From Macrostomum hystrix (Eukaryota > Animalia > Platyhelminthes), in the NCBI GenBank assembly GCA_950097015.1, contig CATNEN010000001.1, positions 20,894,001 through 20,958,000 of the forward strand: a stretch of 64,000 nucleotides of DNA. Reading direction: 5' to 3'. Positions 3,801 through 54,085 of this stretch are shown piece after piece (position 1 is the first letter of the stretch; every line of letters begins with the position of its first letter). The notes under the pieces were generated by a model that had not been told where the DNA came from, did not search any database, and saw only the letters and a list, made by a program, of their open reading frames with translations. The position numbers and the translations under genes were made by a program.

Positions 3801-3901
3801 TTTCGGTAAGCTATCATTATGGATGGATGGACATACGCGATGGATGATGGCATTGCTAGAGCTAATACTACCTTTATCGGCAGCCCCCAGGGGTTTCTGT
3901 C

Positions 3902-6900
3902 ATGAAAATCTGGCTGGAGCTGATTTTCAATTTTTACGTGCTGCTGCTATTGCTTCCTGCACCGTCGCGGGCCTGTCCACCTGGTTCGATGTGTGGGATT
4001 TCATCCCCCTGTCAGAATGGGGCCGTATGCACGGATACATGCAACTGGTACAGCTGCACATGTGCAATTGACTACACAGGTGAGTTGCTTACTTAAGCAT
4101 ATGAATTTAGGACGTACAGCGTACTTTGCTTTCAGTCGTAGCACTCGCTAGGAAACACAAGTTTGTGAAGAATCGACCTTTGTGGGACAATTTGTTTGGT
4201 TGCGGAGGATTCATATACAATTTTATAGTTCATAAAACTCTATCTTCGTGAATCTTCGTGATGCTCAGCCCAACCACTTGGATCGAAAGCTAATGCATCA
4301 ATGTACACACTGATTTCCTAATATCTGAAGCTTCACTTTTGCCCACTCAAGAATTGCTGAAAATGCATCATTTTAGGCCAGAATTGCGAATACAAAAAAA
4401 ACGACTGCTTCGCTAACGCCTGTCTGAACGGCGGCCGCTGTCTCGATGGGATTGGGAAGTGAGTATAGACTCCAATTACCATCGTTAACATCTCTACTGA
4501 GCTTTGGCGCTTTACTTTCAAATTTCACAAAAGACTCAATTGCTCTAGCAATTATTGATGCAAAACAGGTACAGCTGTGACTGCACAGGTACCGGATTCA
4601 CGGGGGCCAGGTGCAAGATCAACATTGACGACTGTGCCACCAGTCCCTGCAGAAACGGAGCCACCTGCATTGACGGCGTGAACGATTTTTCCTGCAGGTG
4701 TTACGAAGGATATGAGGGCAAAACGTGCTCTACCGACATTTCTGACTGCAGCCCGAACAAGTGCCACAACAATGGCACCTGTCTTGACCGCAGCAACCAG
4801 CTATTGTACAACAATCCATCTCTGCCAGCTCCGTTCAACGGCTCCTTCAGCTACTCGCAGGCAGCTGGGTTTCTGTGCGCCTGTCCGGCTGGTGAGTGGG
4901 TGACAAGCATTTTTGTTCCGGTACCAGAAACAGGAAAACTTCCTAGAAATCCCTTTATGATTTCTAAACAAAGCAATTGAAAAAGCAAATTAAAAATAAC
5001 TTCTAACAACAGGTGCTTACGGGGAAACCTGCTCAGTGAACCCGGACGACTGCGTGCTGCCCGGCACCAACCAGAGCGTGTGCGCTCACGCCTCGAGCTG
5101 CACGGACGGCCTGGCCTCATTCACCTGCCACTGCCTGCCCGGATATGAGGGCGCCAACTGCTCGGTGGACATCAACGAGTGCGAGCTGTTCCGTCAGCCG
5201 TGTCGCAACGGAGCTGTCTGCAAGGACCTGCTGGCTGACTACGCCTGCACCAACTGCCCGTCAGGGTTCGGCGGCAAGAACTGCAGCGTCAGGCTGACCG
5301 GCTGCGACTCCGCGCCGTGTCGGAATGGCGCCACCTGCGAGCCGGTTCTCTTGAGGGAGCTGCCGACACCTGAGCACGGACACCTGTGCACCTGCGGCCC
5401 AGGATGGACGGGCTCTCAGTGCAACCTCACAACCCTGGTCTCATTCAACGGCTCCGCCAGCTTCAGCGCCCTGCTCAGCATCGCAGCCTCGAGCAGCTCG
5501 GCTGACTGGACCTTCGAGCTCTCATTCCGGAGCAGTCTCACCCAGTTCGATCTGATTCGGCTGTCCTCAGACTCGGGACTCATCCGAGTCGGTGCTCACA
5601 ACTCCAGCCTCGTGCTGCTGCTGCTGAATAGCAGCTCATCGTCTGTGATTGGTCAGACCAAGTGGCCAATCAGTGACAGTCTGGCTGCTGCTGATTGGCT
5701 CACACTGTCAGTCAGCCTGACCAATGGCAGTGTGACACTGACTCGGACGGGGTCGTCAGCAGGAGTGAGGCAGTCTCTCACACAGCTGGTTGACGGACTG
5801 TCGCACACATTCAAGCGAGGCTCAGTGTCAGTTCGGGTCGGAGGCGACGCGGCATCGGCCAAAGGCGGCTTCCGCGGCTGCGTGCGGGATGTGCGACTCG
5901 CGACTTCCAACTTGACATTCGTCGCCATGGAGACCACGGTGGAGTCGAGCAACGCGACCTGGGGAGTGTGCAGTCGATCGGTGCAGTGCGGCAGCCCATC
6001 GCCCTGTGAGCTGAGCACGAGCTCGAGGTGCTTGGATGTGTGGAATGACTTTGTGTGCCAGTGCGCAGCGGACTTTGGTGGCCGCAACTGTTCTGTGCGG
6101 CTTCCGTCGTTCTCATTCGGACTGGGTGGCAACGCGTCCTCAGCGAGCTTCGAGTCAGTGCCCGCCGTCTCAAGCGTGTTCGGCAGCGACTCGTGGACGA
6201 TCGAGCTGAGGCTGGTGACTCTGTCTCCGGGAGCGTTTCTGATGCTGCTGGGCGACCCGAGCGACTCGGCGACCACTCCGCGACTGCTCGTCACGGTGAG
6301 TACAGCTTTTTGGTTTGAAGGAACTCTCAGATTTTTTTCGCTTTCAATTCCTGTTGCTTGCATTTGTGCATCTTTCGATCTATGCGAGAATAAGCGAATA
6401 GGATTTTACCTCCCCTGCAGATTGATGCCTCAGGCCGTCTGTCCGCCCGACTGCTGCTCAGTACAAACGCCGCTTTCGCATCCCTGACGTCTTTGGACTC
6501 TGTTGCAACCGGCAAGTTTATTTTCGTCAAGATTTCTCTCTCGATTTCTTCTCGTGAGATGACGGTGTCAGTAGCATCGACTGCGATGTCAGCAACTCTG
6601 ATCAGCGCGAGCCCCCTATCGCAGCTGTCAGGCCAGCTCCTCATTGGCAGTTTTAGTGGAGCTGTGGCAGCCCCTGCCCCCGCCCTGGCTGTGGACGAAA
6701 GCCGAAGATCGAGGCGATCAGTTTCCGGACGTGCATCCAGCACTTTAGCATCAGCTGCAGGAAATCTGACAGCGTTTCGTGGTGTTCTGAGCTCCGTCCG
6801 AGTCAATGGGAACAGGCCGCTTATTCTGGAGTCCTCTAGGCCAGACGTTGCTGGCGGCCTGCCTGGGGCGATTTTAGCAAACTTTTCATCTGAGGTTATC

Positions 6901-7423
6901 TTTGGCACTCAAACAGAAGACGTCTGTAAAATTTACAGTCCTTGTGAGAGCGGATCTACCTGCACAAACATTTTCTACAATCGATACTCGTTAGTAGCTA
7001 CCCCCCACAAATAGCTTGATGGCATATTTTGTCGAAATATTTCTTAAACTCCACCGCTCGTTGCCCCACATTCAGCTGTAGATGCCGAACTGGCGGGCAA
7101 GGCGCAACTTGCTCGGAGGCCCAAATTTCTGGACCTTCCGCGGCTGTTCTAGCGGGGATCTTAGTTGCTGTCTGTGCCTTTCTTTCACTTGCCACAATAG
7201 GTAATACAAAAACATAAATTTCATAAATGTCTACTCAACAACCATTAACAGCGTGTACTTTCGATGTACTACCGACTCCATTTCAGTCGCAATAGTCACG
7301 GTGAAGTTTAGAAGGCTCGCAGCCAGCAAAGAAGACCTCGATTACGATGGCCCCATCGGTGTGCGAGTTGGACATCTTAGACGAGAGGGGGTGGCTCAGT
7401 GCCCGCAGGATATGTACTTTTAG
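3902..7423 (+). CDS. Crumbs-like type I membrane protein (signal peptide, ~9 EGF, 2 LamG, TM, 39-aa tail ending QDMYF), ~898 aa
   Basis: Exons 3902-4079, 4377-4458, 4569-4891, 5013-6295, 6421-6989, 7076-7200 and 7287-7423. All introns are GT..AG, phases are consistent, and the total of 2697 nt is divisible by 3. It has the Crumbs-type EGF insertion (DRSNQLLY...FSYSQAAGF) and [28 protein letters not shown]. Intron positions match the crumbs gene on the opposite strand. Confidence 0.88.
5029..6298 (+). repeat. Left arm of a 1270-bp inverted repeat (partner 15632-16901)
   Basis: Reverse complement of 15632-16901. I count about 11 substitutions and no indels; the ORF-track translations are nearly identical. 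Confidence 0.95.
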
Positions 7424-8120
7424 TGAACTTCGTTTTGCCGCTGTCAGTTTGTTTCTATTTACAGTAGTGTAGCGTAATATTTGTAGTTGTAATTGTATTT
7501 ACTGTGAATCAATTGGTTTGCCAATAATTGACCAATCAGTAGTACGAGTCATAAATAATCCAGATGTTATTCTTTAATTCATGCGCCTCCAAGAATAGCA
7601 GCGACTTAACGTAGAAAGGTCACGGTGTTTCTTTCAAATAAATACATTTTTATTTCCCTGTAACTCCCAAAACATTCAATAAATCGCTTTAAAATGCAGA
7701 ACAAGGGCTAAAATTTTCCAGAATGACGAGACATCAGCATCGTCAAGATATTCAAAGATTCTCGTCGGTTAAAACAATTTTCGTCATGCAACCATATCAA
7801 CTAAAATTATTGATTAAATTGTACTTGGATAATATTATTGAACCAGTATGGATTCGTCATTCAGAGCTAAGTTTGTTTTTCTTGTCACCGGCGTCTTGGA
7901 CAAGAACCGCTGACTATCTCGATGTCAGCGGTGGGGGGATAGCGGGGTCACCATTATTGTTTTTGACTAGCGCTAAACCTCGCTAATCTCTACGTATTTT
8001 TAAACCTCATATTTGCACCAGCGCAGCTCTTGACAGCTGCAAATAGGCAAATAGTCTGCTCGAATACTACAAGGATATATGAAATATGAAATAAAAGGTT
8101 AGTGAAGCTTGGAGCTATGA

Positions 8121-8420
8121 AGAGGGTGAGTGGCAGTCCTGGCAGAGCGGTTAACACGTACGTTTGCCTCTCGCAACAAGGTCCCTGAGCTCGATTCCGC
8201 GACGAGGCCACATTCATTGGGGCGCAGCCGCAGAGAGAAGGCTTGGGGGCTTGTCGTGCAATCGATGCCCTTTAGGCTAACCTACGAGGCGCAGTAAGAG
8301 TGTACACTGCCTGACGATGATAAGGATGTACACACCTGTGTGAGTGTGTGCTCAGGATTTAGCGAAATTGGGAGAATTTCCCCCCTCCCGCTGCTGCGGG
8401 TCTACTGTCAACAAATGCTG
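8121..8420 (+). mobile_element. tRNA-derived SINE
   Basis: A-box-like TGGCAGAGCGG and B-box-like GCTCGATTCC, then the shared body GGGCGCAGCCGC...GGCTTGGGGGCTTGTCGTGCAAT...GTGTACACTGCCTGACGATGA. Confidence 0.8.
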
Positions 8421-9616
8421 TGCTAGTTAGTGCCTTCTTGCAAATCTTATCAGTATGTGATCGACGTTACAATTTTCAGGGGTTGTAAAATGGCGTATGT
8501 ATTTCTAGTTTTATATTTATAGATAAGTCAGAGCACAGATAATCAATAAGCTTGAGCACTAAACTTGAAATATAATTTGTTAACTTGTTAGCATTGTTAA
8601 AAATTAGCTAAATAGCCTGCAGACGATAGTTGACTGTGAATAATAGCATTGCGAAAATTGCATACAGTAGTGTATGCCTACACAGCATTTCAGCACACAA
8701 TGGTCCCGAAAAATTGAGTCTTTAGCAAGGAATGATCTCAGAATGAATTCAGATCTTCATGTATTGAGCATAGCATCGGAGTTGCGAAGACAGCTGTGGA
8801 CCACCAATAAAGCCTGCTTGGATTCCAACAATACCTGGTGCTAGAGAAAAATATTGCAATCAAGCTTCCGATGCCAAAGTGAGTAAATTGGAAATGATTG
8901 AAGTCGCTCAAAACTCACAAGAATGACATGATGAGCAAAGAGGCAAATTAACATTTTAAAATATAGATAAAGTTGTTTCCCATAGCAACGATGTTTGCGC
9001 TTTCACAACTGCATTCACTGTACTGGTCTGTACTGGCCAGGTAATCCGTTTCTGCTTTTGGTTGACCCTAAGCTAACCGACCTGCCTTAGACTCTCAGTG
9101 AACAAATGAACAAAAGTTTAAAAAGGTGCCAAAATTATTAAAAACACTTTATGCACGTCTTTTTATTATTAAAATTTAATTATAAAACAAGCTGCAGAAA
9201 AAGTTGAGAATAAAACCTACTCTGATTAATTTGGAAATCAAACAGTAAATATGCGCAAAGACAGTGAGCACAAAACTGATTGTTTGAGTCTGAAAACCAC
9301 GGCCAACAATACTAGGCTTTTATGAGTAAATTCTGCATTTGATATTTTAATGTTTTGTAACACAGCATGCACCCAGAGCCTACTATGAGTAGTGAAATAC
9401 TGCAAACTAGAGGAATGTACAACAAAGATAAAGGATTAAAGTGCAATAAAAACTGGTGCAACAAGATACGAAACTGCTTTCTGGTGGCAAAGATGTACTA
9501 AGACAACAAATGCACAAGTTTGTGAAGTTCTCATCATTAAATATTCTCAATGTGAATAAGTGAACCTCATAACTGATTGATTTTAATATCCGATGTGGGC
9601 GTGGGAGAACAAGACT

Positions 9617-10000
9617 GTTAGAAAGTGTCTGCTGTCTGTTAGACAGTGTCTGCTGTGTGTTAGACAGTATCTGCTGTCTGTTTGACAGTGTCTGCTGTGT
9701 GTTAGACAGTGTCTGCTGTCTGTTAGACAGTATCTGCTGTGTGTTAGACAGTGTCTGCTGTGTGTTAGACAGTGTCTGCTGTCTGTTAGACAGTATCTGC
9801 TGTCTGTTAGACAGTGTCTGCTGTGTGTTAGACAGTACCTGCTGTGTGTTAGACAGTGTCTGCTGTCTGTTAGACAGTATCTGCTGTCTGTTAGACAGCG
9901 TCTGCTGTCTGTTAGACAGTGTCTGCTGTCTGTTAGACAGCGTCTGCTGTCTGTTAGACAGTGTCTGCTGTCTGTTAGACAGTGTCTGCCGTCTGTTTGA
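9617..10000. repeat. 21-bp minisatellite (GTTAGACAGTGTCTGCTGTCT)n
   Basis: Visible tandem array. It explains ORFs 9407..10057 and 9657..10043. Confidence 0.95.
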
Positions 10001-10382
10001 TAAGTTAGAAATAAAAAATAAAAACAGCGATCCTATTAAATAGTTAAACTCCTCCATATTAAAATAGGCATTAATTTATACAACACTTAAAAAACACCAG
10101 GTGAAATCGAATATCAATTTTACAATAAGCACGTGCGAAACACGATTAGCAAAATAGAAGAATAGCAATAAAACATCTATATGCAATAGCAATAGCAATA
10201 AATATGGAAGCACAAAAAATTGTTTTAATAGGGAATAGAATGTTCATTTGGGATAATAACAATACGACTAAGCTCAGGAAACTTGTCTACGCTTATCTAA
10301 CAAAATAATCTAAACATCTTTGCATAAAAGCACACTTGAAGCAGTTTCATAATCTATGATTGGCCAGCCGGTGGACAGCCAA

Positions 10383-13300
10383 TCAAATCAGGCGCTCCTC
10401 CGGCGGCGGCCTGACTGGCGGAGGCGCCTGGGCTGCGCGGCTGTTGCTGCTACTCTCGGCCTTCGACGGTCCGTAGGTGCCGGTCTCTTTGCGCCGGTTC
10501 TGGACGAATTTGAACAGCCCGGCTGCAGCTGGCAGGGACGGGTGGCAATGTCGCGTGTTGGAGTAGAAGGCAATACGATCGCAATATTATTATGAATAGA
10601 ATACCCATGCTTTAAGGCTCCTAACGCCCAACGGCTAACGGCGCCCTCTGATTTTCCATTGGCGCCCGCAAAGCTTGGGTATCAATTTGATTGTACCATA
10701 GACGTTTTTGCCCAAGCTATACTTTCAGAGTCAGAGACGGGGGTGTTGGGCAGAGCCCCCACTTCGGGGTGTGGAGACCCCACTTTGTGATGTCTTATTT
10801 AGGCCAGTGGGATGTTTAAGCGGCGGAGAGAGGGCTTGGGGGCTTGTCGTGCAATTTACGCCCTTGAGGGCCAACCTCCGAGGTACAGCGAGAGTGTACA
10901 CTGCCTAACGATGAGAAAGTCAGGGCAGATGTACACACCTGTGTGCGTGTGTACTCAGGAGTCAGCGAAACGGGGCAGAATTGCCTCCTCGCTGGCTGCG
11001 GGTCTATGATTGTGCCATTGCCTGCTACCATTCTGCAATTATTTTTATATTATTAATAATAAAGCCGTTTCCAAAGGCTTTGTACAGCTGTTCAGTCCAT
11101 GTACTGTGAGTGTCGGAACACTCGTACAATTTTCTCCCCCCCAATAAATTCTGGCCAGTATCCATTTTGTAACACAGTTAAACTGGGGATTAAACAGTGT
11201 AAGATATTTTTATGTCAAGTCTTTACTTCTCTACTTTCGCACAGTAGTCTAAATTGGAACTCACATTTTTTAATATCTGAGTTAGCTAAAGCAACGGTAT
11301 TTTTTCTGTGTTTGCAAATGTTTTCTTTTGTCTGAGAGTCGAACTCCTGACCTCCAAGTCCAGCTTTATGGAGGTCAGGAGTCCAGCTTCATGGCTAAAT
11401 GTTGCTTAGAGCCCGATTGTGACCATAATAAGTCTGCTGTTTGCAGTTCTTACCAACCAAATAGCCTGTAATTTTAGTGGCATTAGCTCTGGCCTTCCGA
11501 CCAGAACGTCAGGAGTTCGAGTCTCAGCCAAATGTAAATAATTTGCTTCCTATGACAAATCCGATGACATAAATCTTTCAACGAAGCCTTTGAGTCACTT
11601 CAGATACCTTTAAGTCGTTAGAGAAGCGTTTGAGTAGTCAGACAAGCTTTTTAGTCTTTTGAGTTCCTATAGAAGCGTTTGAGTCGTTAGAGAAGCGTTT
11701 GAGTCGTTAGAGAAGCGTTTGAGTCGTTAGAGAAACGTTTGAGTCGTTAGAGAAGCGTTTGAGTCGTTAGAGAAGCGTTTGAGTCGTTAGAGAAGCGTTT
11801 GAGTCGTTAGAGAAGCGTTCGAGTCGTTAGAGAAGCGTTTGAGTCGTTTGAGTCCCTATAGAAGCGTTTGAGTCATTAGTGAAGCGTTTGAGTTGTTCGA
11901 AAAGTGTTTGAGTTGTTAGAGAAGCGTTTGAGTCGTTAGAGAAGCGTTTGAGTCGTTAGAGAAACGTTTGAGTCGTTAGAGAAGCGTTTGAGTCGTTAGA
12001 GAAGCGTTTGAGTCGTTAGAGAAGCGTTTGAGTCGTTAGAGAAGCGTTCGAGTCGTTAGAGAAGCGTTTGAGTCGTTTGAGTCCCTATAGAAGCGTTTGA
12101 GTCATTAGTGAAGCGTTTGAGTTGTTCGAAAAGTGTTTGAGTTGTTAGAGAAGTGTTTGAGTTTTTAGAAAAGTGTTTGAGTCGTTAGAGAATTGTTTGA
12201 GTTGTTAGAAAAGCGTTTGAGTCATTAGTGAAGCGTTTGAGTTGTTCGAAAAGTGTTTGAGTCGTTAGAGAAGTGTTTGAGTTGTTCGAAAAGTGTTTGA
12301 GTCGTTAGAGAAGTGTTTGAGTTTTTAGAAAAGTGTTTGAGTCGTTAGAGAAGTGTTTGAGTTTTTAGAAAAGTGTTTGAGTCGTTAGAGAATTGTTTGA
12401 GTTGTTAGAAAAGCGTTTGAGTCGTTACAGAGCGGTATATGCCTAAACACCTATCATAGATATGTCCAAGACCATCACACAATCATAACAAAATGGCATA
12501 AAAAAATGTGCGTATAACTAGCGGTACGTATGAGCGGCGGTAAAGTTAAAGCACTCTCAAAACTGTTAACACACATTTTTCTCATAATTGAAATGCAAAT
12601 CTTCACTGACACAATGCCCCTTACAGTGTCAGTAAATGATGAGACCGTTTTGCTTTCATCTCAGTGTCGTGAGAAACACATTTTTGGCCTAACAGAGCTT
12701 TTCATTGTCTGGCTAGAAATTTATGACTGGATTAGACAGTCGATTTTTTTTCAAGCTAAAAGTCTACAGTTAAACAAAATAACCTATTTATTTTTTAGGA
12801 ACAACAACGTAACAGAATAAAAAACGATACATTTAAACTAAGAAAGAAAAATCTGCACAAAAGCATTCCGAAAGAGTTAGTAAGCACTAACTAAAAGATA
12901 AGCAACGGGACAAATTAGCGATAATCAGGGTCCCGCTCACGGGGGTCAGTGGCAGAGCGTTTGCCTCTCGCACCAAGGTCCCTGAGCTCGATTCCACGGC
13001 GAGGCCACATTTATCTGGGGCGCAGCCGCGGAGAGAAGGCTTGGGGGCTTGTCGTGCAATTTACGCCATTGAGGGCCAACCTCCAAGGCACAGTGAGAGT
13101 GTACACTGCCTGACGATGAGAAAGTCAGGGCAGATGTACGCACAGTGTGTGCCTGCGTACAGTATCTGTGTGCGTGTGTGCTCAGGAGTCAACGAAATGG
13201 GCAGAATTGCTCCTCGTTAGCTGCGGGTCTAGTGTCACCAATTGATGTGCCATTGCCCGCAGCCCTCCTGCAATTATTACTATTCTTCTTTTGAGTTTAC

Positions 13301-16300
13301 GTAAAATCACACATCCCAACTTAAAACCTTAGGTGTAGTTCTGAAAATTCAATATGAAGAATTAGATTTAGTTCAATGTTTCATTTTAAATGGAAATTTT
13401 AATACGCGTTTGATTCAAAGTTAGAAAGCCAATTCGATTACAATCTTACCTATTCGAGAATATCTTATCACTTTTTCCATGCTTTTTTAATTGCGCAATC
13501 AATTAGAGACTATAAAGAATGATTCCGCTCTACTTGCGTGATCCTACTTATGTCAGTAGGGCAATTGCGTTTTATAAAAAATATTTACATTTTTACAGAA
13601 ACTGTTTCCTTAGAAATGCTCAGGGTCCCACTCACCAACAGCAATGAAGATGACGAGGCCGACTACGCAGATGATGATGATGGCGGTGGTGGACACGCTG
13701 GCCATGGCGCCCAGCGAGTTGGCGCAGGTTGTGCCATAGAAGCCAGCAGCGCAGTCGCAGCGGAACAGGTTCCACAAGTCCGCGCAGCTGCCGGAGTTCT
13801 GGCAGACGCTGGCGGGCCTACCGTCCACTGTTGTCTGGCACACGCGGTCACCATGGCAACCCAGTAGTGGAGCGGACACTGCCGAGGCCCAATGAAATCC
13901 CGGAGTCCCAGCTGGCAGAGACCGATTGACCATGGGCGCCAGGTAGCCGTTAAGCCGGACATTGTCCAGACAGCCTTTGAATGCTGGGCCGCCAATGATG
14001 ATGCTGGCGGTTTGATCAAGCAGCAAGCTGGACAAGATGTTGGACTTCCCAGCTAAGGCCATGTCACTGCCATTGATTGACACGACAACTGACAGGGGAG
14101 CACCAGCTGAGCAATTGACGCTGAAAGTGAAAGGCAATGCTGTTGCTATGGAAACAGGTAGCAACACTGTCTGGTCATCAAGGGTGACCTGCAGCTGACT
14201 GGAGTTGCATCCCACGGACAGCCGGCGGGTACCAGTTGCCACGGACAACAGCTGACAGTCGGACTGGCGCGTCCGAGCCCACCCGGCAACGGTTGCTAGG
14301 GGCTCATTAAGGCTCCGGATGGCCAAGCTAAGCTGATTGGTTACTGGGGGGCTCTGCAGCGAGCTGCCGAACGTGGCTGCCGTGCGACCTGCAAAATAAA
14401 ATTTCGCAGCTTTTCCTATCAGCGTGAGTCTTAGTCGGCTTGGAACCAGCAGACTCAAATCAGCGTGAGTCTTAGTCGGCTTGGAACCAGCAGACTCAAA
14501 ATTCGAACTCACATTCGATGCCGCTTGGGTTCAAGTTGACGCACTCGGTGCCGTTCGGGCAGAACTCGCCAGTCGAGATGCAGGCATCCCTGACGTTGCA
14601 GTTCACACCGCGCCAGCCAGCTGTGCAGCTGCAGCTGGGCAAAATAATGTTTGAGGGTTTGAAAAGACAGATGATTTGGGATCAAAGTGACTGGCAGGAT
14701 AAAATATTATCTATCATCGATTTTTTAATTTAAAGATTTTAATGGGCATCAGGGTTGTTGGCTATCAGAGATTAGAGCTATTAGGGAGGGGAATGGGGCT
14801 GTTAAGCGCTTAGGAAATCTGGGCAATGAAATCTGGGATATTAGTGAATCAGAGCAATTGGGGGATAATGGCTATTAGGGGATCAGGGTTATTAGAGGAT
14901 CAGGGATATTAGGGGATCAGGGATATTAGAGTTATTATGGAGCAGGGTAAGATTCCGAGAGCTAGCTCAAAGTTGAAATGTTAAAGCACTCACGAGTAGG
15001 AATTGTAGAACACATCAGTGCAGGCGCCAGCATTCCTGCAGGGCGCCGTGGTGGCACAGACCGCCTCAGTTAGACTGCCAGTGGCCACATTGATGGATTC
15101 GCTGGCGACCACAGCTCCTGGTAGGCTGTCAATCAGGCTAGAAGCCACCAGTCCCAGAATCAGCGGCCGATTGCCGTTAACTCTGACGGCGCCCAGAACG
15201 CCTCTGAAGGCAGTCTCGTTCCCTGCGGCAGCCACGACGCTTGATGGCAGCTCCAGCGCGGCTCTGCTAGTACTGGAACCGCTGCTAGTGGGAGGAACCA
15301 CAGTCGGAGCTGGCGCGGCAGGGGCTCCGCTGAAGCCGCCGATGATAAGCTGACCGGAGGGCTGTGGCAGGGGAGCCGCACTGCTCAGCGATGCCGACCT
15401 CACAGTCGACGCCACCGTCAGCGACAACTCGCGACCTGAGATCGACAGGGCGATCTTCACGTAGACAAAGCTGCCAGTGGCCACCGAGTCAGGAGATGTC
15501 AGCGATGCGACCTGGGAGCCGTTGCTGAGCAGCAGCTGGGCGGAGAGACGACCGATGGCATCGATCTAAAACAAAAAAATTGGCTCAAAAATTAATTTCG
15601 ATAATTGTCTGGTTGTTATTATCACTCTACCCACCGTGACGAGCAGTCGTGGAGTAGTCGCCGAGTCGCTCGGGTCGCCGAGCTGCATCAGAAACGCTCC
15701 TGGAGACAGAGTCACCAGCCTCAGCTCGATCGTCCACGAGTCGCCGCTGAACACGCTTGAAACGGCGGGCACTGACTCGAAGCTCGCTGAGGACGCGTTG
15801 CCCCCCAGTCCGAATGAGAACGACGGAAGCCGCACAGAACAGTTGTGGCCACCAAAGTCCGCTGCGCACTGGCACACAAAGTCATTCCACACATCCAAGC
15901 ACCTCGAGCTCGTGCTCAGCTCACAGGGCGATGGGCTGCCGCACTGCACCGATCGACTGCACACTCCCCAGGTCGCGTTGCTCGACTCCACCGTGGTCTC
16001 CATGGCGACGAATGTCAAGTTGGAAGTCGCGAGTCGCACATCCCGCACGCAGCCGCGGAAGCCGCCTTTGGCCGATGCCGCGTCGCCTCCGACCCGAACT
16101 GACACTGAGCCTCGCTTGAATGTGTGCGACAGTCCGTCAACCAGCTGTGTGAGAGACTGCCTCACTCCTGCTGACGACCCCGTCCGAGTCAGTGTCGCAC
16201 TGCCATTGGTCAGGCTGACTGACAGTGTGAGCCAATCAGCAGCAGCCAGACTGTCACTGATTGGCCACTTGGTCTGACCAATCACAGACGATGAGCTGCT

Positions 16301-19300
16301 ATTCAGCAGCAGCAGCACGAGGCTGGAGTTGTGAGCACCGACTCGGATGAGTCCCGAGTCTGAGGACAGCCGAATCAGATCGAACTGGGTGAGACTGCTC
16401 CGGAATGAGAGCTCGAAGGTCCAGTCAGCCGAGCTGCTCGAGGCTGCGATGCTGAGCAGGGCGCTGAAGCTGGCGGAGCCGTTGAATGAGACCAGGGTTG
16501 TGAGGTTGCACTGAGAGCCCGTCCATCCTGGGCCGCAGGTGCACAGGTGTCCGTGCTCAGGTGTCGGCAGCTCCCTCAAGAGAACCGGCTCGCAGGTGGC
16601 GCCATTCCGACACGGCGCGGAGTCGCAGCCGGTCAGCCTGACGCTGCAGTTCTTGCCGCCGAACCCTGACGGGCAGTTGGTGCAGGCGTAGTCAGCCAGC
16701 AGGTCCTTGCAGACAGCTCCGTTGCGACACGGCTGACGGAACAGCTCGCACTCGTTGATGTCCACCGAGCAGTTGGCGCCCTCATATCCGGGCAGGCAGT
16801 GGCAGGTGAATGAGGCCAGGCCGTCCGTGCAGCTCGAGGCGTGAGCGCACACGCTCTGGTTGGTGCCGGGCAGCACGCAGTCGTCCGGGTTCACTGAGCA
16901 GTTTTTGCCTGAGGTTCCTGGAAGAAAGGAAACGTAGAACTTCTGTTTCATGAACCGGTCTTTACTGACACAATTCCCGCGCCTTCCCAAGCCGCGTTTA
17001 CTCGATTAAATCGGTACTCCGGGACTCGAGAGAATTATGCCAATTTTAAACAAAGGCTTTTCAGAGACTCAAAATTTCCCTTCGATAATTTATGTTTTTC
17101 TTTAATAATTCATGCTAAATAGTCGATAATTTATTTTTCCCCTCAATTATTTAAACTTTCCCTAAGATTTTTTAATGCTACTCGCAATTCATACATTTCA
17201 CTCGTTAACACATGTTACCCCCTGATAATTCATTTTACACCCTTGATTAATTATGCTACGCCCGATAATTTAGAACATCTTGTTGAATCCTTCTACTTCC
17301 TCGATAGATCATGCTACCCCTCAATAATAATAATTGGCTACCATTCGATAGATCATGCTACCCCTCAATAATAATAATTGGCTACCATTCGATAGATCAT
17401 GCTACAGCCTCAATAATAATAATTGGCTACCATTCGATAGATCATGCTACCCCTCAATAATAATAATTGGCTACCATTCGATAGATCAAGCTACCCCTCA
17501 ATAATAATAATTGGCTACCATTCGATAGATCATGCTACCCCTCAATAATAATAATTGGCTACCATTCGATAGATCAAGCTACCCCCTCAATAATAATAAT
17601 TGGCTACCATTCGATAGATCATGCTACCCCCCTCAATAATAATAATTGGCTACCATTCGATAGATCATGCTACCCCTCAATAATAATAATTGGCTACCAT
17701 TCGATAGATCATGCTACCCCTCAATAATAATAATTGGCTACCATTCGATAGATCATGCTACCCCTCAATAATAATAATTGGCTACCATTCGATAGATCAT
17801 GCTACCCCTCAATAATAATAATTGGCTAACCGTCGATAGATCATGCTACCCCTCAATAATAATAATTGGCTACCATTCGATAGATCATGCTACCCCTCAA
17901 TAATAATAATTGGCTAACCGTCGATAGATCATGCTACCCCTCAATAATAATAATTGGCTACCATTCGATAGATCAAGCTACCCCCTCAATAATAATAATT
18001 GGCTACCATTCGATAGATCATGCTACCCCTCAATAATAATAATTGGCTAACCGTCGATAGATCATGCTACCCCTCAATAATAATAATTGGCTACCATTCG
18101 ATAGATCATGCTACCCCTCAATAATAATAATTGGCTACCATTCGATAGATCATGCTACCCCTCAATAATAATAATTGGCTACCATTCGATAGATCAAGCT
18201 ACCCCCTCAATAATAATAATTGGCTACCATTCGATAGATCATGCTACCCCTCAATAATAATAATTGGCTACCATTCGATAGATCATGCTACCCCTCAATA
18301 ATAATAATTGGCTACCATTCGATAGATCATGCTACCCCTCAATAATAATAATTGGCTACCATTCGATAGATCATGCTACCCCTCAATAATAATAATTGGC
18401 TACCCCTCGATTGATCATGCTACCCCTCAATAATAATAATTGGCTACCATTCGATAGATCAAGCTACCCCTCAATAATAATAATTGGCTACCATTCGATA
18501 GATCATGCTACCCCTCAATAATAATAATTGGCTACCCCTCGATAGATCATGCTACCCCCTCAATAATAATAATTGGCTACCATTCGATAGATCAAGCTAC
18601 CCCTCAATAATAATAATTGGCTACCCCTCGATAGATCATGCTACCCCTCAATAATAATAATTGGCTACCCCTCGATAGATCATGCTACCCCCTCAATAAT
18701 AATAATTGGCTACCATTCGATAGATCATGCTACCCCTCAATAATAATAATTGGCTACCCCTCGATAGATCATGCTACCCCCTCAATAATAATAATTGGCT
18801 ACCCCTCGATAGATCATGCTACCCCTCAATAATAATAATTGGCTACCCCTCGATAGATCATGCTACCCCTCAATAATAATAATTGGCTACCATTCGATAG
18901 ATCATGCTACCCCTCAATAATAATAATTGGCTACCATTCGATAGATCAAGCTACCCCTCAATAATAATAATTGGCTACCCCTCGATAGATCATGCTACCC
19001 CTCAATAATAATAATTGGCTACCCCTCGATAGATCATGCTACCCCCTCAATAATAATAATTGGCTACCATTCGATAGATCATGCTACCCCTCAATAATAA
19101 TAATTGGCTACCCCTCGATAGATCATGCTACCCCCTCAATAATAATAATTGGCTACCCCTCGATAGATCATGCTACCCCTCAATAATAATAATTGGCTAC
19201 CCCTCGATAGATCATGCTACCCCTCAATAATAATAATTGGCTACCATTCGATAGATCATGCTACCCCTCAATAATAATAATTGGCTACCCCTCGATTGAT

Positions 19301-22300
19301 CATGCTACCCCCTCATGCAATATCTTCAAGAAATCATTATATTCCCTAGATCTAATGCTTTGCTTCACCAATTCCCAGCAATTTACCTGACATCTCATGC
19401 TGCTATCCATTGATATCTAACGCTATATTCTTTAGTTTCATATTTTCCTTCGAATTATTTTGCCTTAAAAATATAGAAAAATAATGATTGCTTCCCTGCT
19501 CGAAAAAACGTTACATTTCAAAAAGAGTAACGCCATGTGCTCCGATTAAAATATTTTCTCCTAGTTCTGAATCGAATAACGATTACTGCAATGTTGGAAA
19601 CGTTTTCTTTCGTTATGAAAATAAAATAACGCTAACAGCTACGCGTACGTATGCCCGAGCGGTATTCATTTAGTTTTGAATCGAATAACGCTTGAAGCCA
19701 TGCTAAAAATGGCTTCAACTAAAAATGAATAACGCTGTTAGCTATTTACATATTTTTTCTAGTTCTGAATTTGATAGCGCTTGCAGCAATGCTCAGAAAC
19801 CTTCCTTAGTTTTAGTATCAAATAACACTTGCTGCTGCACTCGAAAAAACTTACCAGCGTATATTCATTTCTCACAGCGAGAAGGTTCAAAAAGGCAAAC
19901 AAATATTTGCTTTGACAGTAGGTAATCGAATGAGCTTACTATTTATACTGGAACCCAATAAAAAATTACCTTAAATATTGACTAGCAACGATGCCCCCTT
20001 TTCGGGAGCTTAAACCTGAATGCAAAAATCTGTGAAGTTACGAAAGTTTTTCAGTCTGTCAAACAATGCTACCCTTCCCATAAATCACACTACCCCTCTA
20101 CAATTCATGCTACTCCCTTGATTCATTATTACCCCCTCGACAAGTGCATAATTGTTGTGAGACTCACCAGCCGGGCACAAGCATTCAAAGCCAGCTGCAA
20201 GTGAATAATTGAAAGCGCCATTGAAGGGAAATGGCAAGCTGGCATTGCCATAGAGTCGCTGATTGCTTCTCTCCAGGCAGGTGCCATTGTACTGACACGG
20301 GTTGGGCCTGCAGTCGGGCACATCAACAGTACAGTTCCTGCCAGTGTAGGCGGCTAAGCAGTTGCAGGTGTAGTTCTTCACTCCGTCGACACAAACGCCA
20401 GCGTTGGCGCACGGGTTACCAGATGCGGCGCAGTCGTCAATGTTTTCACTGCAGTTGGCTCCACGGAATCCAGTGTCAGAGCAGTTGCAGGTGTAGCTGA
20501 GGGCGGGCGAGGAAAAACTGGTTACAGAACTGGGTGGGGATAACACTCCACAGAACTGGGTGGGGATAACACTCCACAGAACTGGGTGGGGATAACACTC
20601 CACAGAACTGGGTGGGGATAACACTCCACAGAACAGGGATGGGGATAAAACTCCACAGAACTGGGATGGGGATAACACCCCACAGAACTGGGATGGGGAT
20701 AACACCCCACAGAACAGGGATGGGGATAAAACTCCACAGAACAGGGATGAGGATAACACCCCACAGAACTGGGATGGGGATAACACCCCACAGAACAGGG
20801 ATGGGGATAACACTCCACAGAACTGGGATGGGGATAACACCCCACAGAACTGGGTGGGGATAACACCCCACAGAACAGGGATGGGGATAACACTCCACAG
20901 AACTGGGGTTGGGAAAACACTCCACAGAACTGGGGTTGGGAAAACACCCCACAGAACAGGGATGGAGATAACACCCCACAGAACAGGGATGGAGATAACA
21001 CCCCACAGAACTGGGATGGGGATAACACCCCACAGAACTGGGATGGGGATAACACTCCACAGAACTGGGGTTGGGAAAACACTCCACAGAACTGGGGTTG
21101 GGAAAACACCCCACAGAACAGGGATGGAGATAACACCCCACAGAACAGGGATGGAGATAACACTCCACAGAACTGGGGTTGGGAAAACACTCCACAGAAC
21201 AGGGATGAGGATAACACCCCACAGAACAGGGATGGGGATAACACCCCACAGAACTGGGATGGGGATAACACTCCACAGAACTGGTTGGGGATAATGATAG
21301 CATATAATGAAGTGGTTGAGTATATTTCTAAACAAATAATTTTTTAAGGATAAAAGCTTGTACAACACACGACGCTTTCTTGCACAAAAATGTGTTTCTA
21401 AAAATAGCATTCAAATTAGGCACACGCCCAACACAGCGAAGTGCATTGAAATGTGATAATATCGCAGATTAAGTAAATCAGGCCTGACCTGGCATTGCCG
21501 TCAATGCAGCTGCCTCCGTTCAGGCATGCACCAGCGAAGCAGTCGTTCGTGTTCGCAGAGCAGTCTCTGCCACCCCAGCCCATGTAGCAGCTGCAGTTGT
21601 AGTTATTCACCAGATTGCTGCACCTACCGTTTAGGCAGGGGTTTGAGGCGCAGTTGTCAGTAACGTTCTCGCATCTAGTGCCTGCAAGCAAACATTTTAG
21701 GATAATATTTGTAGGAAATATAGGAAAATAAAACCGATGCAACTGTTAGGCAAACTGCGTGCTAGCTAGCAGAAGCTGAAGCTAGCAGGGTGAGATAGAC
21801 AAGAGAGGGCAGTGGACAGAGGGTGAGATGGAAGTCAGGTGAACAGTCAGAGGGTGAGATAGAAGTCAGGTGAACAGTCAGAGGTTGAGATAGAAGTCAG
21901 GTGAACAGTCAGAGGGTGAGATAGGAGTCAGGTGAACAGTCAGAGGTTGAGATAGAAGTCAGGTGAACAGTCAGAGGATGAGATAGAAGTCAGGTGAACA
22001 GTCAGAGGGTGAGATAGAAGTCAGGTGAACAGTCAGAGGGTGAGATAGGAGTCAGGTGAACAGTCAGAGGTTGAGATAGAAGTCAGGTGAACAGTCAGAG
22101 GGTGAGATAGAAGTCAGGTGAACAGTCAGAGGGTGAGATAGAAGTCAAGTTGAACAGTCAGAGGGTGAGATAGAAGTCAAGGTGAACAGTCAGAGGGTGA
22201 GATAGAAGTCAAGGTGAACAGTCAGAGGGTGAGATAGAAGTCAAGTTGAACAGTCAGAGGGTGAGATAGAAGTCAAGGTGAACAATCAGAGGGTGAGATA

Positions 22301-25300
22301 GAAGTCAGGGGAATAGTCAGAGGGTGAGATAGAAGTCAGGGGAATAGTCAGAGGGTGAGATAGAAGTCAGGTGAACAGTCAGAGGGTGAGATAGAAGTCA
22401 AGGTGAACAATCAGAGGGTGAGATAGAAGTCAGGGGAATAGTCAGAGGGTGAGATAGAAGTCAAGGGAATAGTCAGAGGGTGAGATAGAAGTCAGGTGAA
22501 CAGTCAGAGGGTGAGATAGAAGTCAAGGTGAACAGTCAGAGGGTGAGATAGAAGTCAAGTTGAACAGTCAGAGGGTGAGATAGAAGTCAAGGTGAACAAT
22601 CAGAGGGTGAGATAGAAGTCAGGGGAATAGTCAGAGGGTGAGATAGAAGTCAGGGGAATAGTCAGAGGGTGAGATAGAAGTCAGGTGAACAGTCAGAGGG
22701 TGAGATAGAAGTCAAGGTGAACAATCAGAGGGTGAGATAGAAGTCAGGGGAATAGTCAGAGGGTGAGATAGAAGTCAAGGGAATAGTCAGAGGGTGAGAT
22801 AGAAGTCAGGTGAACAGTCAGAGGGTGAGATAGAAGTGAGCATCGAGTGCTCAGAGGGTGAGCACAATGGACTAGATGAACAATCGATAACCGAGACCCT
22901 GAATCGAACCGCAGCAAAGCATTTGCCTGTAGCCATCAGTGCAAAGTCAAGCGATAAAGCAAGCGTGATAATTCAATATCGATAACAGATTTCGATATCG
23001 ATTTTTTAATCAAATTCTGAACCGAATCATGCAGAAGCTCCAAAATCTTACACTCGGCATAAGCAATGAGCGATATTTAATCGATAAATTATAAAAACGG
23101 TTATAAAATATACGATACACATAATCAGTGAAATATGCTTCTCGAGTACACCTAAAAGAAACACAAACACAGAAACGTTTACCTCTCAATGCAAGCCGTC
23201 TGTTAAAATGTAATTTTGCAATACTGCGTTAGTGCACACCTGATAGCTATGCATTTACGAGCTCGTAGCAGAACAAGATAGTTAGGCATTGTACAACACT
23301 AAGCAACCGGAGACAGAACATCTACTGCTTGAGGATCTGGGGAGGTTGAGAACGGGAGCTGAGGATCTGGGGAGACTGGGAGCAGTAGTTGGGGATCTGG
23401 GGAGGTTGAGAACGGGAGCTGAGGATCTGGGGAGACTGGGAGCAGTAGTTGGGGATCTGGGGAGGTTGAGAACGGGAGCTGAGGATCTGGGGAGACTGGG
23501 AACAGGAGCTGTGGATCTGGGGAGACTGGGAACAGGAGTTGAGGATACGGGCAGACTGGGAACAGGAGTTGAGGATACGGGCAGACTGGGAACAGGAGCT
23601 GAGGATCTGGGGAGACTGGAAACAGGAGCTGAGGATCTGGGCAGACTGGGAACAGGAGCTGAGGATCTGGGGAGACTGGGAGCAGGAGTTGAGGATCTGG
23701 GGAGACTGGGAACAGGAGTTGAGGATCTGGGGAGACTGGGAGCAGGAGTTGAGGATCTGGGGAGGTTGGGAACAGGAGTTGAGGATCTGGGGAGACTGGG
23801 AGCAGGAATTGAGGATCTGGGAGGTTGGGAACAGGAGTTGAGGATCTGGGGAGACTGGGAGCAGGAATTGAGGATCTGGGAGGTTGGGAACAGGAGTTGA
23901 GGATCTGGGGAGACTGGGAGCAGGAATTGAGGATCTGGGGAGGTTGGGAACAGGAGTTGAGGATCTGGGGAGACTGGGAGCAGGAATTGAGGATCTGGGA
24001 GGTTGGGAACAGGAGTTGAGGATCTGGGGAGACTGGGAGCAGGAATTGAGGATCTGGGAGGTTGGGAACAGGAGTTGAGGATCTGGGGAGACTGGGAGCA
24101 GGAATTGAGGATCTGGGAGGTTGGGAACAGGAGTTGAGGATCTGGGGAGGTTGGGAACAGGAATCAAGTATCTAGGAATGCTGGAAGCAGGAGTTGAGGA
24201 TGTGGGCAGGCTGGGAGCAGAAGTTGAGGATCTGGGAATGCTGGGAGCAGGAGTTGAGGATCTGGAAATGGATCTGGGAATGCTGGGAGCAGGAGTTGAG
24301 GATCTGGAAATGGATCTGGGAATGCTGGGAGCAGGAGTTGAGGATCTGGAAATGGATCTGGGAATGCTGGAAACAGGGGGTTGGGAGTTAAGAATCATGA
24401 TCTGAGGCAAGGGGATAAAAACCTAAAATTTGCGGGCGATAATAATTAGTGAGAGTACCTAATAGTAAATCTAAAGAAGCCCGGATACCAACAATGTGCT
24501 CATAAAAGAAGCAGGTAAAGAATGGCCCCGGCATGGCAAGCTGTACAAACCATGGAAGCCGGGCAGACAGATGCATTTGAAGTAGGGCGCAGTCATGATG
24601 GTTCCAGAGCAGATGCCATTCAGGCAGACGGGAGCCACCGCGGGATCGATTCCCAGGTGTGGCTGGGCGGTGGAGCAGTAGTTGATGAGCACATTGCAGG
24701 TGTTGCCAGTGTAAGGCAGGTTGCACACACAGGTGGGCCCAGTGCTCAGCGGGTTGCAGAAGCCACCATTTTTGCAAGTGTCGCGTGAGCAGCCAACGTC
24801 TCGCCTCTCTCGATGGGATTGGACAACTCCTGATAATGAGAATTTCATGAGAAATATGACTTATAGCTTGTTATTAAAAGTCGAATTGCAAACAATAGGT
24901 TTGTAGGTTGGAATCTCAGACCAAGCAAAACAATTTATGTCCTTAAGCAAAACACTAAATTCCATGTTGCTTTTAGCAAAAACCAGCTCAAGTAGAAATC
25001 TGGTGTGGCAGCCAGTCGACAGACTGAAAAGCTGAACATAGCCTTTAATCAGTAGAAAGACAAGGCGAATCCATATTGGTTCAAAAATAATAGACAGTAA
25101 AACCAATACAGTATAATCAAGAACAATAGCAGAAATTGTTTCATGACGAATTGTTTCATGATAGTTTAAGTTTTTTGAGCAGAAATATTGTGCCTCCAGA
25201 CACCCAAAGAGAACCATTGAATATCTTGACAAGGTCAATGTTATGTGATTTTCGGAGTTGTTTTATAAGATAGATTTTATTAGAGCCGAAAATTGTAGCC

Positions 25301-28323: not shown

Positions 28324-29082
28324 TTAGTTCTTGTAAAAGAATTCGCTCGTCAGGTCGTTCGCCAGAGAGGCTGGCACAGCTGGGAACTCAAGAAGGCTGC
28401 ACAGGCCCTGCTGCTGCGAGAACACAGCTCCGCGACAATGCGAGGACTGGTCGCAGGTGTACAGGCACTGTGTCAGGCTGCCAGCGATGGCTGTGGTGAA
28501 AGGCACCGTTGAAGCATTTAGAGCTACCAATGTCCTGTTGCCGATGCCAAACCTGTTTGCATCTGCAATGGTTCAATGGGAGCTCGAAATGATTTAGTTC
28601 ATCATTTACATGTGCCGTACATAAGTTCGCTTCGCTTTAATTCGCTCACTGAGGTAGCTCAGCTGGTGCACGGAATTCCTAAATGCTCCGCCGCATTTTT
28701 GCAAAGAATTCCCAGCGCAGTTTTGGTTGCAGTCGGACTCTGGCGCGCTGCCCTGCCGCCCGTAGGCATTGTCGCAGAAGCACCAGTCGGTGGCCTGGAC
28801 GCCGAAGTAGCGAAAGTCGCTCATGGCACAGACTCCAGCGCAGACCTCCTGAGTCATCTGCGGACTGTTCACGGAGTCCTTAAAGTTGCTGAAGGTCACT
28901 GAGTTGATTCGCGTGATGCCGTAATTTCTCATGCCGCTAAGGTCTCGAGTTGAGTCTACGTTGTCCATGAAGCAGCCCAGGTAGTTGAACTGTACCTGCC
29001 TGTTGCCCAGTGTTGCCAGGGCGCCAGCGCACAGCAGGCTCAAGACTAATCCTAACACATGAGCACAGCTTGAGTCTGACAT
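28324..29082 (-). CDS. Secreted WSC-domain protein with C-terminal PAN/apple-like Cys motif, ~223 aa
   Basis: Exons 29082-28650 and 28562-28324, joined by a phase-1 GT..AG intron. Hydrophobic signal VLGLVLSLLCAGALA. WSC signature YLGCF-x-D...MT-x-E-x-C...C...YFGVQ...CFC...C...CAGN...CGG. Exon 2 contains CLYTC-x5-C-x-GAVF-x6-C-x-LL. Confidence 0.85.
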
Positions 29083-53660: not shown

Positions 53661-54085
53661 ATCGATGCTGCGTGAAATATCCTCTGCCGGAACTCATACT
53701 CAATCTCTCTACTCTTATACTCTAATATGCTAGTCTGGGCTGGTTAAAATAATTTTTCCTACTGGAACTGGTGTTACCTCAACGGTCTACTGACAGTAGC
53801 ACATCAAGAATGCTTTAATTTTTATTCGCCGTTTTTAGTTTGAATTAAATCAGATCTCAAAGGACTTGTTACGGACTCACAAAATGAGTCAGGACAGAAA
53901 GGACTGAAATCGGACCCCCCTAAATTACGCTGAAAATAGAACAAAATATCCTCGAAAAACACCGAAAAAGACATTAACAGTCGGTTTAAAGTCTTTAGAC
54001 AAAAAAAATTTTTTTTGGAAACCAGCTCATGGGGGACCAATCCGAGTCCGATCAGGGTCCGCCGGACTCAACCTTTTACACTGGG

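Follow-up and report, generated by a model that had tools for sequence, protein, structure and literature searches.

The crumbs proteins (Crb/CRB1-3) are polarity proteins whose ectodomain follows an EGF-laminin-G-EGF-laminin-G order with three laminin-G domains, and which cross the membrane once and end in a short tail that carries a FERM-binding motif and a C-terminal ERLI. In the clustered protocadherins, conversion between the variable exons homogenises one part of the ectodomain within species, while the remainder is diverse (Noonan et al. 2004, as summarised in PMC3966226). In the RHD/RHCE pair, regional gene conversion homogenises most of the gene, while a selected exon escapes (Innan 2003, as summarised in PMC3966226).

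The window analyzed here, i.e., the whole 64-kb stretch of Macrostomum hystrix DNA, contains two genes, designated A and B, which belong to a tandem array of crumbs-like genes that share one long, nearly identical exon (hereafter the tract exon). The most probable explanation is recurrent non-allelic (interlocus) gene conversion within this array, to which we assign, from the sequence comparisons, a probability of approximately 0.9. The observation adds a clean case to a known process, namely region-limited concerted evolution. A full-text literature search found no paper on a crumbs expansion in Macrostomum. The exons of gene A and the corresponding parts of gene B are as follows.

3902..4079, forward strand: gene A exon 1, with start codon, signal peptide and first EGF (translation; spliced joint 4077>4375)
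4377..4458, forward strand: gene A exon 2, EGF (spliced contigs, translation)
4569..4891, forward strand: gene A exon 3, which carries EGF repeats and escapes homogenisation with B (73% nucleotide and 59% amino acid identity to B; RNA contigs 4569-4890)
5013..6295, forward strand: gene A exon 4, the tract exon, 1283 nt, with three EGF, laminin-G 1, then a further EGF and the opening strands of laminin-G 2 (joints 4890>5012 and 6294>6420; Pfam EGF; 38% identity to crumbs-like proteins)
6421..6989, forward strand: gene A exon 5, the ‘next’ exon, which completes laminin-G 2, begins an EGF and escapes homogenisation (dS 1.66 and 56% amino acid identity against B; RNA contig with 0 differences)
7076..7198, forward strand: gene A exon 6, with the end of the EGF and the start of the membrane span (spliced contigs, translation)
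7285..7423, forward strand: coding part of gene A exon 7, with the remaining membrane span and a tail of ~39 aa without ERLI (spliced contigs, translation)
24474..24860, reverse strand: open frame with the N-terminal EGF exon of gene B (62.5% identity to the N-terminus of P0155)
20169..20495, reverse strand: gene B exon that precedes the tract, with orthology to Macrostomum lignano P0155 (83% amino acid identity; clade support 100/99)
15635..16917, reverse strand: gene B homologue of the tract exon, 1283 nt (alignment; acceptor TTCCAG, donor GTGGGT)
14993..15565, reverse strand: gene B ‘next’ exon (weak laminin-G match)
13613..14530, reverse strand: open frame with the laminin-G 3, EGF and membrane-span exon of gene B (open frame and homology)

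Spliced contigs demonstrate that gene A is transcribed with the tract exon, both joints of which (4890>5012 and 6294>6420) are GT..AG, and that several family members are transcribed. The gene A product comprises ~898 aa, with a single membrane span and a ~39-aa tail ending in ...QDMYF, and the tract exon represents 48% of its coding sequence. The third block of gene B is homologous to the third block of P0005, and Pfam returned no laminin-G for it; a gene B tail exon was not found. All homology searches were performed exon by exon rather than on joined spliced gene models.

The closest matches of the tract exon beyond Macrostomum are the ‘protein crumbs-like’ sequences of a starfish and a scallop, with 38% identity across the whole exon, which aligns at residues ~1006-1388 of crumbs-like proteins, i.e., at the expected position. 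The domain order is that of crumbs, with EGF repeats and interspersed laminin-G, and gene A has the EGF-laminin-G-EGF-laminin-G order, the single membrane span and the short tail in common with these proteins. Gene A differs from crumbs in its length (~898 aa), in having two rather than three laminin-G domains, since its exon 5 leads directly into the last part of an EGF and the membrane span, and in its tail, which lacks the C-terminal ERLI; a further difference is the expansion of the M. hystrix family to twelve or more tandem genes. For the M. hystrix tract peptide, Pfam identified EGF and did not identify laminin-G, including laminin-G 1; the laminin-G domains were placed through the M. 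lignano orthologues, in which Laminin_G_2 scores above cut-off. The Laminin_G_2 domain spans the exon junction in P0015 (residues 341-449, junction at 366/367), as it does in P0003 and P0005, while a search of solved-structure sequences with P0015, which returned EGF and a single neurexin laminin-G match, did not clarify the domain limits. The intron at the 3' limit splits laminin-G 2, so that what is homogenised does not correspond to a folding unit.

The preliminary description reported a nearly identical 1270-bp pair with approximately 11 differences clustered at the 3' end, starting 16 nt inside the exon and ending at the donor, and this is confirmed. The pairwise alignment of 5029-6298 (forward) with the reverse complement of 15632-16901 is ungapped across 1270 bp in both copies and contains exactly 11 mismatches, at offsets 704, 1055, 1098, 1140, 1153, 1156, 1200, 1217, 1221, 1245 and 1251; the initial 704 nt are identical, and the final 216 nt contain ten of the eleven differences (binomial P = 1.9e-7). 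According to RNA contigs the exon occupies 5013-6295; the 5' edge of the tract hence lies 16 nt inside it (acceptor AG at 5011-5012) and the 3' edge coincides with the splice donor (GTGAGT in A, GTGGGT in B). A repeat search of the 64-kb window identified this pair (5010-6305/15625-16920) as its sole long inverted repeat, and A and B, 9.3 kb apart and inverted, are the physically closest pair. The tract and its layers are represented by the following features.

5029..6298, forward strand: homogenised tract, gene A copy (1270 bp, 11 of them mismatched with copy B; DNA contigs across both edges)
15632..16901, reverse strand: homogenised tract, gene B copy, in the opposite orientation to A and the other array copies (alignment, inverted repeat, array matches)
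5029..6083, forward strand: sub-tract, putatively the newest A-B conversion event (A and B differ at 1 of 1055 positions)
6084..6295, forward strand: probable older homogenisation layer at the 3' end of the exon (A and B differ at 10 of 212 positions, 4.7%)

In the sub-tract, A and B are each 1.6-2.1% different from the next nearest copies (U9 and U10), and the lone A-B difference, at 5733, is private to A; in the older layer, at seven of the ten sites at which A and B differ, the B base is absent from every other copy. The A-B pair thus appears to represent a very recent conversion of the 5' 1055 bp over an older, family-wide layer. Outside the tract this similarity is lost: the flanking introns of A and B are unalignable, as was previously noted, and sliding-window identity drops from 99-100% within the tract to 35-59% past both exon edges. 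The neighbouring exons, judged by eye to differ at ~40-45% of amino acids, exhibit a measured amino acid identity of 55-59%, and exons located 70-125 nt from the tract exon are saturated at synonymous sites.

Homogenisation was initially described as involving two crumbs paralogues; A and B do stand as the closest and most recently converted pair, but the homogenised exon is shared by at least seven independent paralogue lineages, between which the introns are unalignable. A search with the tract exon returned 14 matches, all located at G000:C1 20.758-20.911 Mb, and the array contains at least eight near-full and three partial tract copies (91-99% identity) within ~150 kb, among twelve or more crumbs-like genes in tandem. 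Identity to A declines along the array, from 98.9% at 9 kb and 97.4-97.8% at 12-22 kb to 96.1-96.6% at 58-107 kb and 90.8% at 123 kb. The copies are also mosaic: for example, over 5063-5312 U3 matches U1 at 96-100% yet A at only 66-80%, while U2 and U4 are homogenised only as far as ~5400 and U5-U7 only from ~5264. The 5' limit of the tract is gene-specific, being situated 16 nt into the exon in B, at ~5264 in three genes whose upstream EGF differs, and, in U2 and U4, where a deletion begins or ends. Furthermore, the first 262 nt of the gene B ‘next’ exon are 91-92% identical to U1, U2 and U4, and other exons of the array carry smaller homogenised tracts.

The exon-limited ectopic conversion between old paralogues that the preliminary description had proposed is substantiated by the dS contrast, the sliding-window drop and the incongruence of the trees, which are the comparisons it had named. 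Between A and B, dS is 0.023-0.028 in the tract versus 1.66 (saturated) in the next exon, the flanking value thus being anything but low, and across five lineages the corresponding ranges are 0.02-0.14 and 1.0-2.2. At the protein level, tract identity is 89-99% within the M. hystrix genome, 86-92% within M. lignano and 66-73% between the species, while that of the next exon is 47-74%, 60-63% and 48-63%, respectively. The tract copies group by species with clade supports of 100/100, and the AU test rejects a tract clade of gene B and P0155 (p = 0.00016, 306 log-likelihood units). The upstream-exon tree, calculated from a short B-P0155 alignment of 107 columns, unites gene B with M. lignano P0155 (100/99) and rejects a single clade of all M. 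hystrix genes (AU p = 0.0002). Both flanks of gene B are still orthologous to P0155. The next-exon tree is star-like, and species-specific clades (71/92) are neither shown nor rejected by it, for which reason the age argument rests on the gene B upstream exon and the saturated dS. Judged from these trees and distances, the paralogues are old, with at least the B lineage predating the split from M. lignano, and the tract exon appears to evolve in concert within species, whereas the other exons have drifted far apart. In the M. lignano paralogues, which were compared at the protein level only and from imperfect gene models, high identity begins and ends at identical exon limits.

According to the proposed mechanism, one long, GC-rich exon of 1283 nt would be copied repeatedly between old paralogues, with tracts ending where homology ends, i.e., at the intron on the 3' side and at a gene-specific point on the 5' side. 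A break would be repaired from a paralogous template, heteroduplex being blocked by the non-homologous introns, and the high identity that results may permit further conversion in a self-sustaining feedback. Because gene B is inverted relative to the array, the A-B exchange must be conversion without crossover; unequal crossing-over is ruled out by this orientation of B relative to all other copies, together with the orthology of both B flanks to P0155.

In line with the shared adhesion surface suggested in the preliminary description, it could be argued that conversion supplies the homogeneity and that selection keeps it: the exon would encode a shared surface, such as a cis-interaction or ligand-binding module, and diversification would be left to the N-terminal EGFs, the C-terminal parts and the tails. 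Homogenisation of the same exon independently in two species would fit such a role, as would its large share of the gene A coding sequence (48%), the transcription of several family members and the protocadherin precedent of one homogenised ectodomain in an otherwise diverse protein (PMC3966226). We nevertheless consider a selected module rather unlikely: the intron at its 3' limit divides laminin-G 2, the tract dN/dS (0.29-0.64) does not fall below that of the next exon (0.20-0.38), the exon has changed at ~30% of amino acids between the species, and the tract exon occurs in three genes without the first two EGFs and in three without laminin-G 1. Less likely still, and proposed here by analogy, the array might function as the clustered protocadherins do, with the homogenised EGF/laminin-G block as a common interaction surface and the unconverted N-terminal EGFs, C-terminal halves and tails providing member-specific specificity and signalling; this would, if true, represent an invertebrate crumbs-derived cell-recognition system with a constant part maintained at the DNA level.

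An assembly or polishing artefact, by which the exon of one copy was overwritten by reads of another or haplotypes were collapsed or expanded, is very improbable, even if the perfect A-B identity across 704 bp is what such an error might produce and all read support derives from contigs of public short-read runs, for copy A only, of which the best DNA run is possibly from the same sample as the assembly. The DNA contigs 3781-5058 and 6272-7600 run from unique intron into the tract, crossing the two edges of copy A without a mismatch, and in spliced contigs the A-specific opening 16 nt of the tract exon follow directly on gene A exon 3. Word depth, as a rough check of copy number only, rises from ~81 in the flanks to 530-1100 in the tract (6.5-13.7x), which fits 8-11 copies. 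Furthermore, the pattern recurs at ~10 loci with different edges as well as in the independently produced M. lignano proteins, and polishing is unable to turn 70% identity into 99%. Young duplicates with very fast divergence outside the exon, or an exon frozen by nucleotide-level constraint (e.g., an overlapping element), are hardly credible: the former can draw on the next-exon tree, which leaves species-specific clades (71/92) unrejected, but is at odds with a next-exon dS of 1.0-2.2 and unalignable introns, which indicate old neutral divergence, and with the orthology of the B upstream exon to P0155 and the rejection of an all-M. hystrix clade, while the latter could draw on the long antisense open frames inside the exon, yet such frames are expected at 63% GC, and the exon differs by ~30% of amino acids between species and by a dS of 0.02-0.14 among copies.

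Interlocus gene conversion, as the favoured explanation, places the locus alongside the systems introduced above. As in the protocadherins, a tandem array of cell-surface, adhesion-type genes has part of its ectodomain homogenised in a species-specific pattern. In contrast to the protocadherins, in which alternative first exons are joined by splicing to common constant exons, every unit here is a complete gene of several exons with a signal peptide and tail of its own, and the family is crumbs-like EGF/laminin-G rather than cadherin; moreover, the homogenised unit is bounded by an intron and cuts a domain, and one participant is inverted. As in RHD/RHCE, closely linked paralogues convert and divergence is sharply exon-dependent, but here one exon is homogenised while most of the gene escapes, and many genes are involved.

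The array is an unusually clean case of region-limited concerted evolution, in that at least seven old lineages keep one exon at 91-99.9% identity and two species show the effect; it would illustrate that non-homology of introns sets the limits of conversion tracts and that an inverted copy is able to participate. It also carries a warning, as trees or dS values obtained from the tract exon would badly misdate the macrostomid crumbs-like expansion, and it marks the tract exon as the part of crumbs-like proteins to examine first for shared function. As a possibility related to the protocadherin-like reading, a crossover between the inverted 1.27-kb copies of A and B, should it occur, would flip the 9.3-kb segment between them and swap the C-terminal halves of the two genes in frame. 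Finally, GC3 in gene A is 0.77 in the tract versus 0.40-0.68 in its remaining exons, the full ranges being 0.76-0.77 and 0.40-0.69, a modest excess, uncontrolled for expression or codon use, in the direction that GC-biased conversion expects.

Two crumbs-like paralogues of the window, gene A on the forward strand and gene B on the reverse strand and convergent with it, share a homogenised tract at 5029-6298 (copy A, +) and 15632-16901 (copy B, -). Pairwise alignment of copy A with the reverse complement of copy B, 1270 bp each and ungapped, yielded 11 mismatches; nucleotides 1-704 are identical, while the last 216 nt hold 10 of the 11 mismatches (binomial P = 1.9e-7). A repeat search of the 64-kb window returned this pair as its only long inverted repeat. 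Base-by-base alignment with flanks placed the start of identity 16 nt past the acceptor (gene A exon from 5013) and its 3' limit at the donor (gene A exon end 6295; GTGAGT in A, GTGGGT in B), the introns past both edges being unalignable between A and B. The limits of this tract exon are experimental rather than guessed, since contigs of public runs contain the spliced GT..AG joints 4890>5012 and 6294>6420. The preliminary description, which had reported two 1270-bp copies with about 11 differences and the first ~700 bp identical, running from 16 nt inside the exon to the splice donor between unalignable introns, is right in every checkable detail.

Exons of genes A and B (gene A readable completely, from spliced contigs and sequence; gene B from open frames and exon mapping, its tract exon and the exon directly 3' of it, the 'next' exon, from exon mapping)
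3902-4079, +, gene A, start codon and signal peptide
4377-4458, +, gene A exon
4569-4891, +, gene A exon
5013-6295, +, gene A tract exon
6421-6989, +, gene A 'next' exon
7076-7198, +, gene A exon
7285-7423, +, gene A exon, cytoplasmic tail within
near 24474-24860, -, gene B exon
near 21419-21745, -, gene B exon
near 20169-20495, -, gene B exon directly upstream of the tract exon
15635-16917, -, gene B tract exon
14993-15565, -, gene B 'next' exon
inside 13613-14530, -, gene B laminin-G/EGF/membrane-span exon

In the gene A product of ~898 aa, a signal peptide is followed by EGF repeats, the part encoded by the tract exon (48% of the coding sequence), the remainder of a laminin-G domain, one more EGF, a membrane span and a ~39-aa tail. 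Pfam finds EGF domains in the tract-exon peptide, the best matches of which in an exhaustive protein search are Macrostomum lignano proteins (54-72% identity), followed by 'protein crumbs-like' of starfish and scallop (38% identity, whole exon aligned, at residues ~1000-1400 of 2250-2500). These matches identify the genome as that of a macrostomid flatworm and the genes as crumbs-like in their predicted ectodomain. Gene A has two laminin-G domains only and no ERLI terminus, and the label 'crumbs-like' denotes architecture, with no claim on polarity function. Its cytoplasmic tail (7285-7423) ends in QDMYF and has the motif GVRVGHLR in common with the M. lignano protein P0005.

Searched with the tract, the window's own genome gave 14 matches, all inside 20.758-20.911 Mb of the window's contig, G000:C1, and the array was mapped from 150 kb of DNA upstream of the window. 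It contains at least twelve genes, all of which have a signal-peptide exon of their own and, with B as the sole exception, lie on the + strand. Upstream units are designated U1-U7, U9 and U10 in array order, gene A following directly after U10. Recent whole-unit duplicates with shared introns are U2/U4, U5/U6/U7 and U9/U10, and there are seven independent lineages (U1, U2/U4, U3, U5-7, U9-10, A and B), between which introns are unalignable. The homogenisation of A and B described at the outset stands, but its restriction to two genes does not: besides B, ten further units carry the tract exon.

Identity of the tract exon to that of gene A
B, 98.9%
U9 and U10, 97.4-97.8%
U5-U7, 96.1-96.6% from ~5264 on, with a different EGF upstream of there
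U3, 90.8%
U2/U4, 96-98% over 5003-5405
U1, ~75-78% overall (background level), except the first ~100 nt

Identity to A declines as the distance along the array grows, and laminin-G 1 is deleted in U2/U4 and U1.

Synonymous divergence between A and B (dS, Nei-Gojobori) is 0.023-0.028 in the tract versus 1.66 in the 'next' exon, which in gene A begins just 125 nt downstream; the outcome that the preliminary description had named as refuting its reading, flanking dS as low as in the tract, is thus clearly not seen. Across five lineages, the corresponding values are 0.02-0.14 and 1.0-2.2. At the protein level the tract is no more tightly constrained than the 'next' exon, dN/dS being 0.29-0.64 and 0.20-0.38, respectively. 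GC3 peaks in the tract of both genes (0.76-0.77 versus 0.40-0.69 elsewhere), a pattern compatible with GC-biased conversion though not proof of it.

Five M. lignano paralogues were compared over the tract. Amino acid identity of the tract exon is 89-99% within the M. hystrix genome, 86-92% within M. lignano and 66-73% between species, and its tree consists of two species clades (support 100/100); for the 'next' exon, the values are 47-74%, 60-63% and 48-63%, and the tree is star-like. In the exon directly 5' of the tract exon, gene B groups with the M. lignano protein P0155 (83% identity, support 100/99), and one clade for all M. hystrix genes costs 37 log-likelihood units (AU p = 0.0002), while in the tract forcing B with P0155 costs 306 (AU p = 0.00016). 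As the gene B 'next' exon is, furthermore, the best match to the readable C-terminal part of P0155, the orthology of B to P0155 holds on either side of the tract. Between old M. lignano paralogues (P0155 versus P0005 or P0003), identity rises abruptly to 93-100% where the homologous exon starts and breaks down where it ends. The overall pattern is that classically left by concerted evolution; here it is restricted to a single exon and is found in both species. The first 16 nt of the B exon encode G-T-S-G-K-N-C, near the orthologue's G-S-S-G-N-D-C, and those of the A exon G-A-Y-G-E-T-C, near the G-T-Y-G-D-T-C of P0005; the orthology signal returns just outside the tract.

B alone lies in the opposite orientation to the other copies, which rules out unequal crossing-over as the source of its homogeneity and calls for conversion without crossover. 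The tracts are mosaic: over 5063-5312, U3 is 96-100% identical to U1 and only 66-80% to A, and U2/U4 match A only 5' of their own deletion; identity to A over the 230-nt piece 3' of it is 81%, the level to be expected of so short a block of homology. Between A and B, 5029-6083 holds a single difference in 1055 bp, private to A, and each gene is there 1.6-2.1% from U9/U10; 6084-6295 holds 10 differences in 212 bp, at seven of which the B base is found in no other copy. We read these two layers as very recent exchange between the nearest two copies over older family-wide homogenisation. The exon limit is likely mechanical: lacking intron homology, a heteroduplex could not extend into the introns, and the neighbouring exons, ~70% identical, would fall below recombination tolerance; we infer that identity and conversion feed back on each other. 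The observation is real, and ectopic gene conversion limited to one exon, as originally interpreted, is borne out by per-exon dS, incongruent trees and mosaic tracts, with a wider scope than described.

Conversion is a general feature of the array, given smaller identity islands in other exons, found at 20.764-20.885 Mb of G000:C1 upstream of the window (loci L010-L023) and in B at 15306-15567. When the array was compared with itself, eight genes agreed at 90-93% in the signal-peptide exon and several at 91-95% in a 220-nt EGF exon; B (15306-15567), U1, U2 and U4 agreed at 91-95% in the initial 262 nt of the 'next' exon, where A-B identity is 70%. The tract exon is the longest and most widely shared conversion target in the array. 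Gene conversion is well known to cause region-limited concerted evolution, as in protocadherin clusters and RHD/RHCE (PMC3966226), among many others. A full-text literature search for a crumbs expansion in Macrostomum returned no paper.

Over 1055 bp the inverted copies of A and B agree at 99.9%, and 9.3 kb separates them. If they crossed over, the intervening segment would be inverted and the two genes would exchange C-terminal halves in frame; no such exchange has been fixed, since both B flanks are still orthologous to P0155.

The shared adhesion surface originally proposed, kept by conversion, has a precedent in clustered protocadherins (PMC3966226) but is improbable here even with selection superimposed on conversion. 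In P0015 (hit 341-449, junction 366/367), P0003 and P0005, all M. lignano orthologues, Pfam Laminin_G_2 hits that pass the curated cut-off cross the exon junction, so that the homogenised block ends inside a domain, and several array genes are without parts of it; this predicted anatomy argues against a module-level explanation.

An assembly artefact, a concern raised at the outset, is very unlikely, as the block recurs at ~10 loci with different edges and also in M. lignano. The read evidence consists of contigs for copy A only, and the best DNA run, which may be the assembly's own sample, gave contigs 3781-5058 and 6272-7600 with 0 differences each; these contigs connect copy A to unique sequence at either edge. 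Word depth rises from ~81 in the flanks to 530-1100 in the tract (~6.5-13.7-fold), in agreement with 8-11 assembled copies. Three other runs, RNA-derived given their GT..AG joints, join gene A exons to the tract exon and contain the downstream exons without difference. Over 5264-6252, the main contig of these runs is U6/U7-like and shows 19-25 differences from A besides two 3-nt deletions. Its word depth is 84-173 versus ~4.7 in the exons proper to gene A, so that the RNA-derived contig depth of the tract comes mostly from another family member.

Many long minisatellites (period 16-49 nt, up to 110 copies) occur in the window, several of them within gene B introns and giving rise there to long spurious open frames. 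A dispersed repeat of ~200-300 nt (76-82% identity), probably a transposon remnant, is found between genes A and B and next to them.

Repeats in the window
1421-3801, 17301-19311, 20524-21294, 21787-22837, 23329-24265, 44976-46462, 52255-53667 and others, minisatellites
519-713, 8161-8423, 10819-11000, 12958-13292, dispersed repeat

An open frame at 28609-29115 (-) has a cysteine pattern that, by eye, we take to resemble a putative WSC-type carbohydrate-binding domain.
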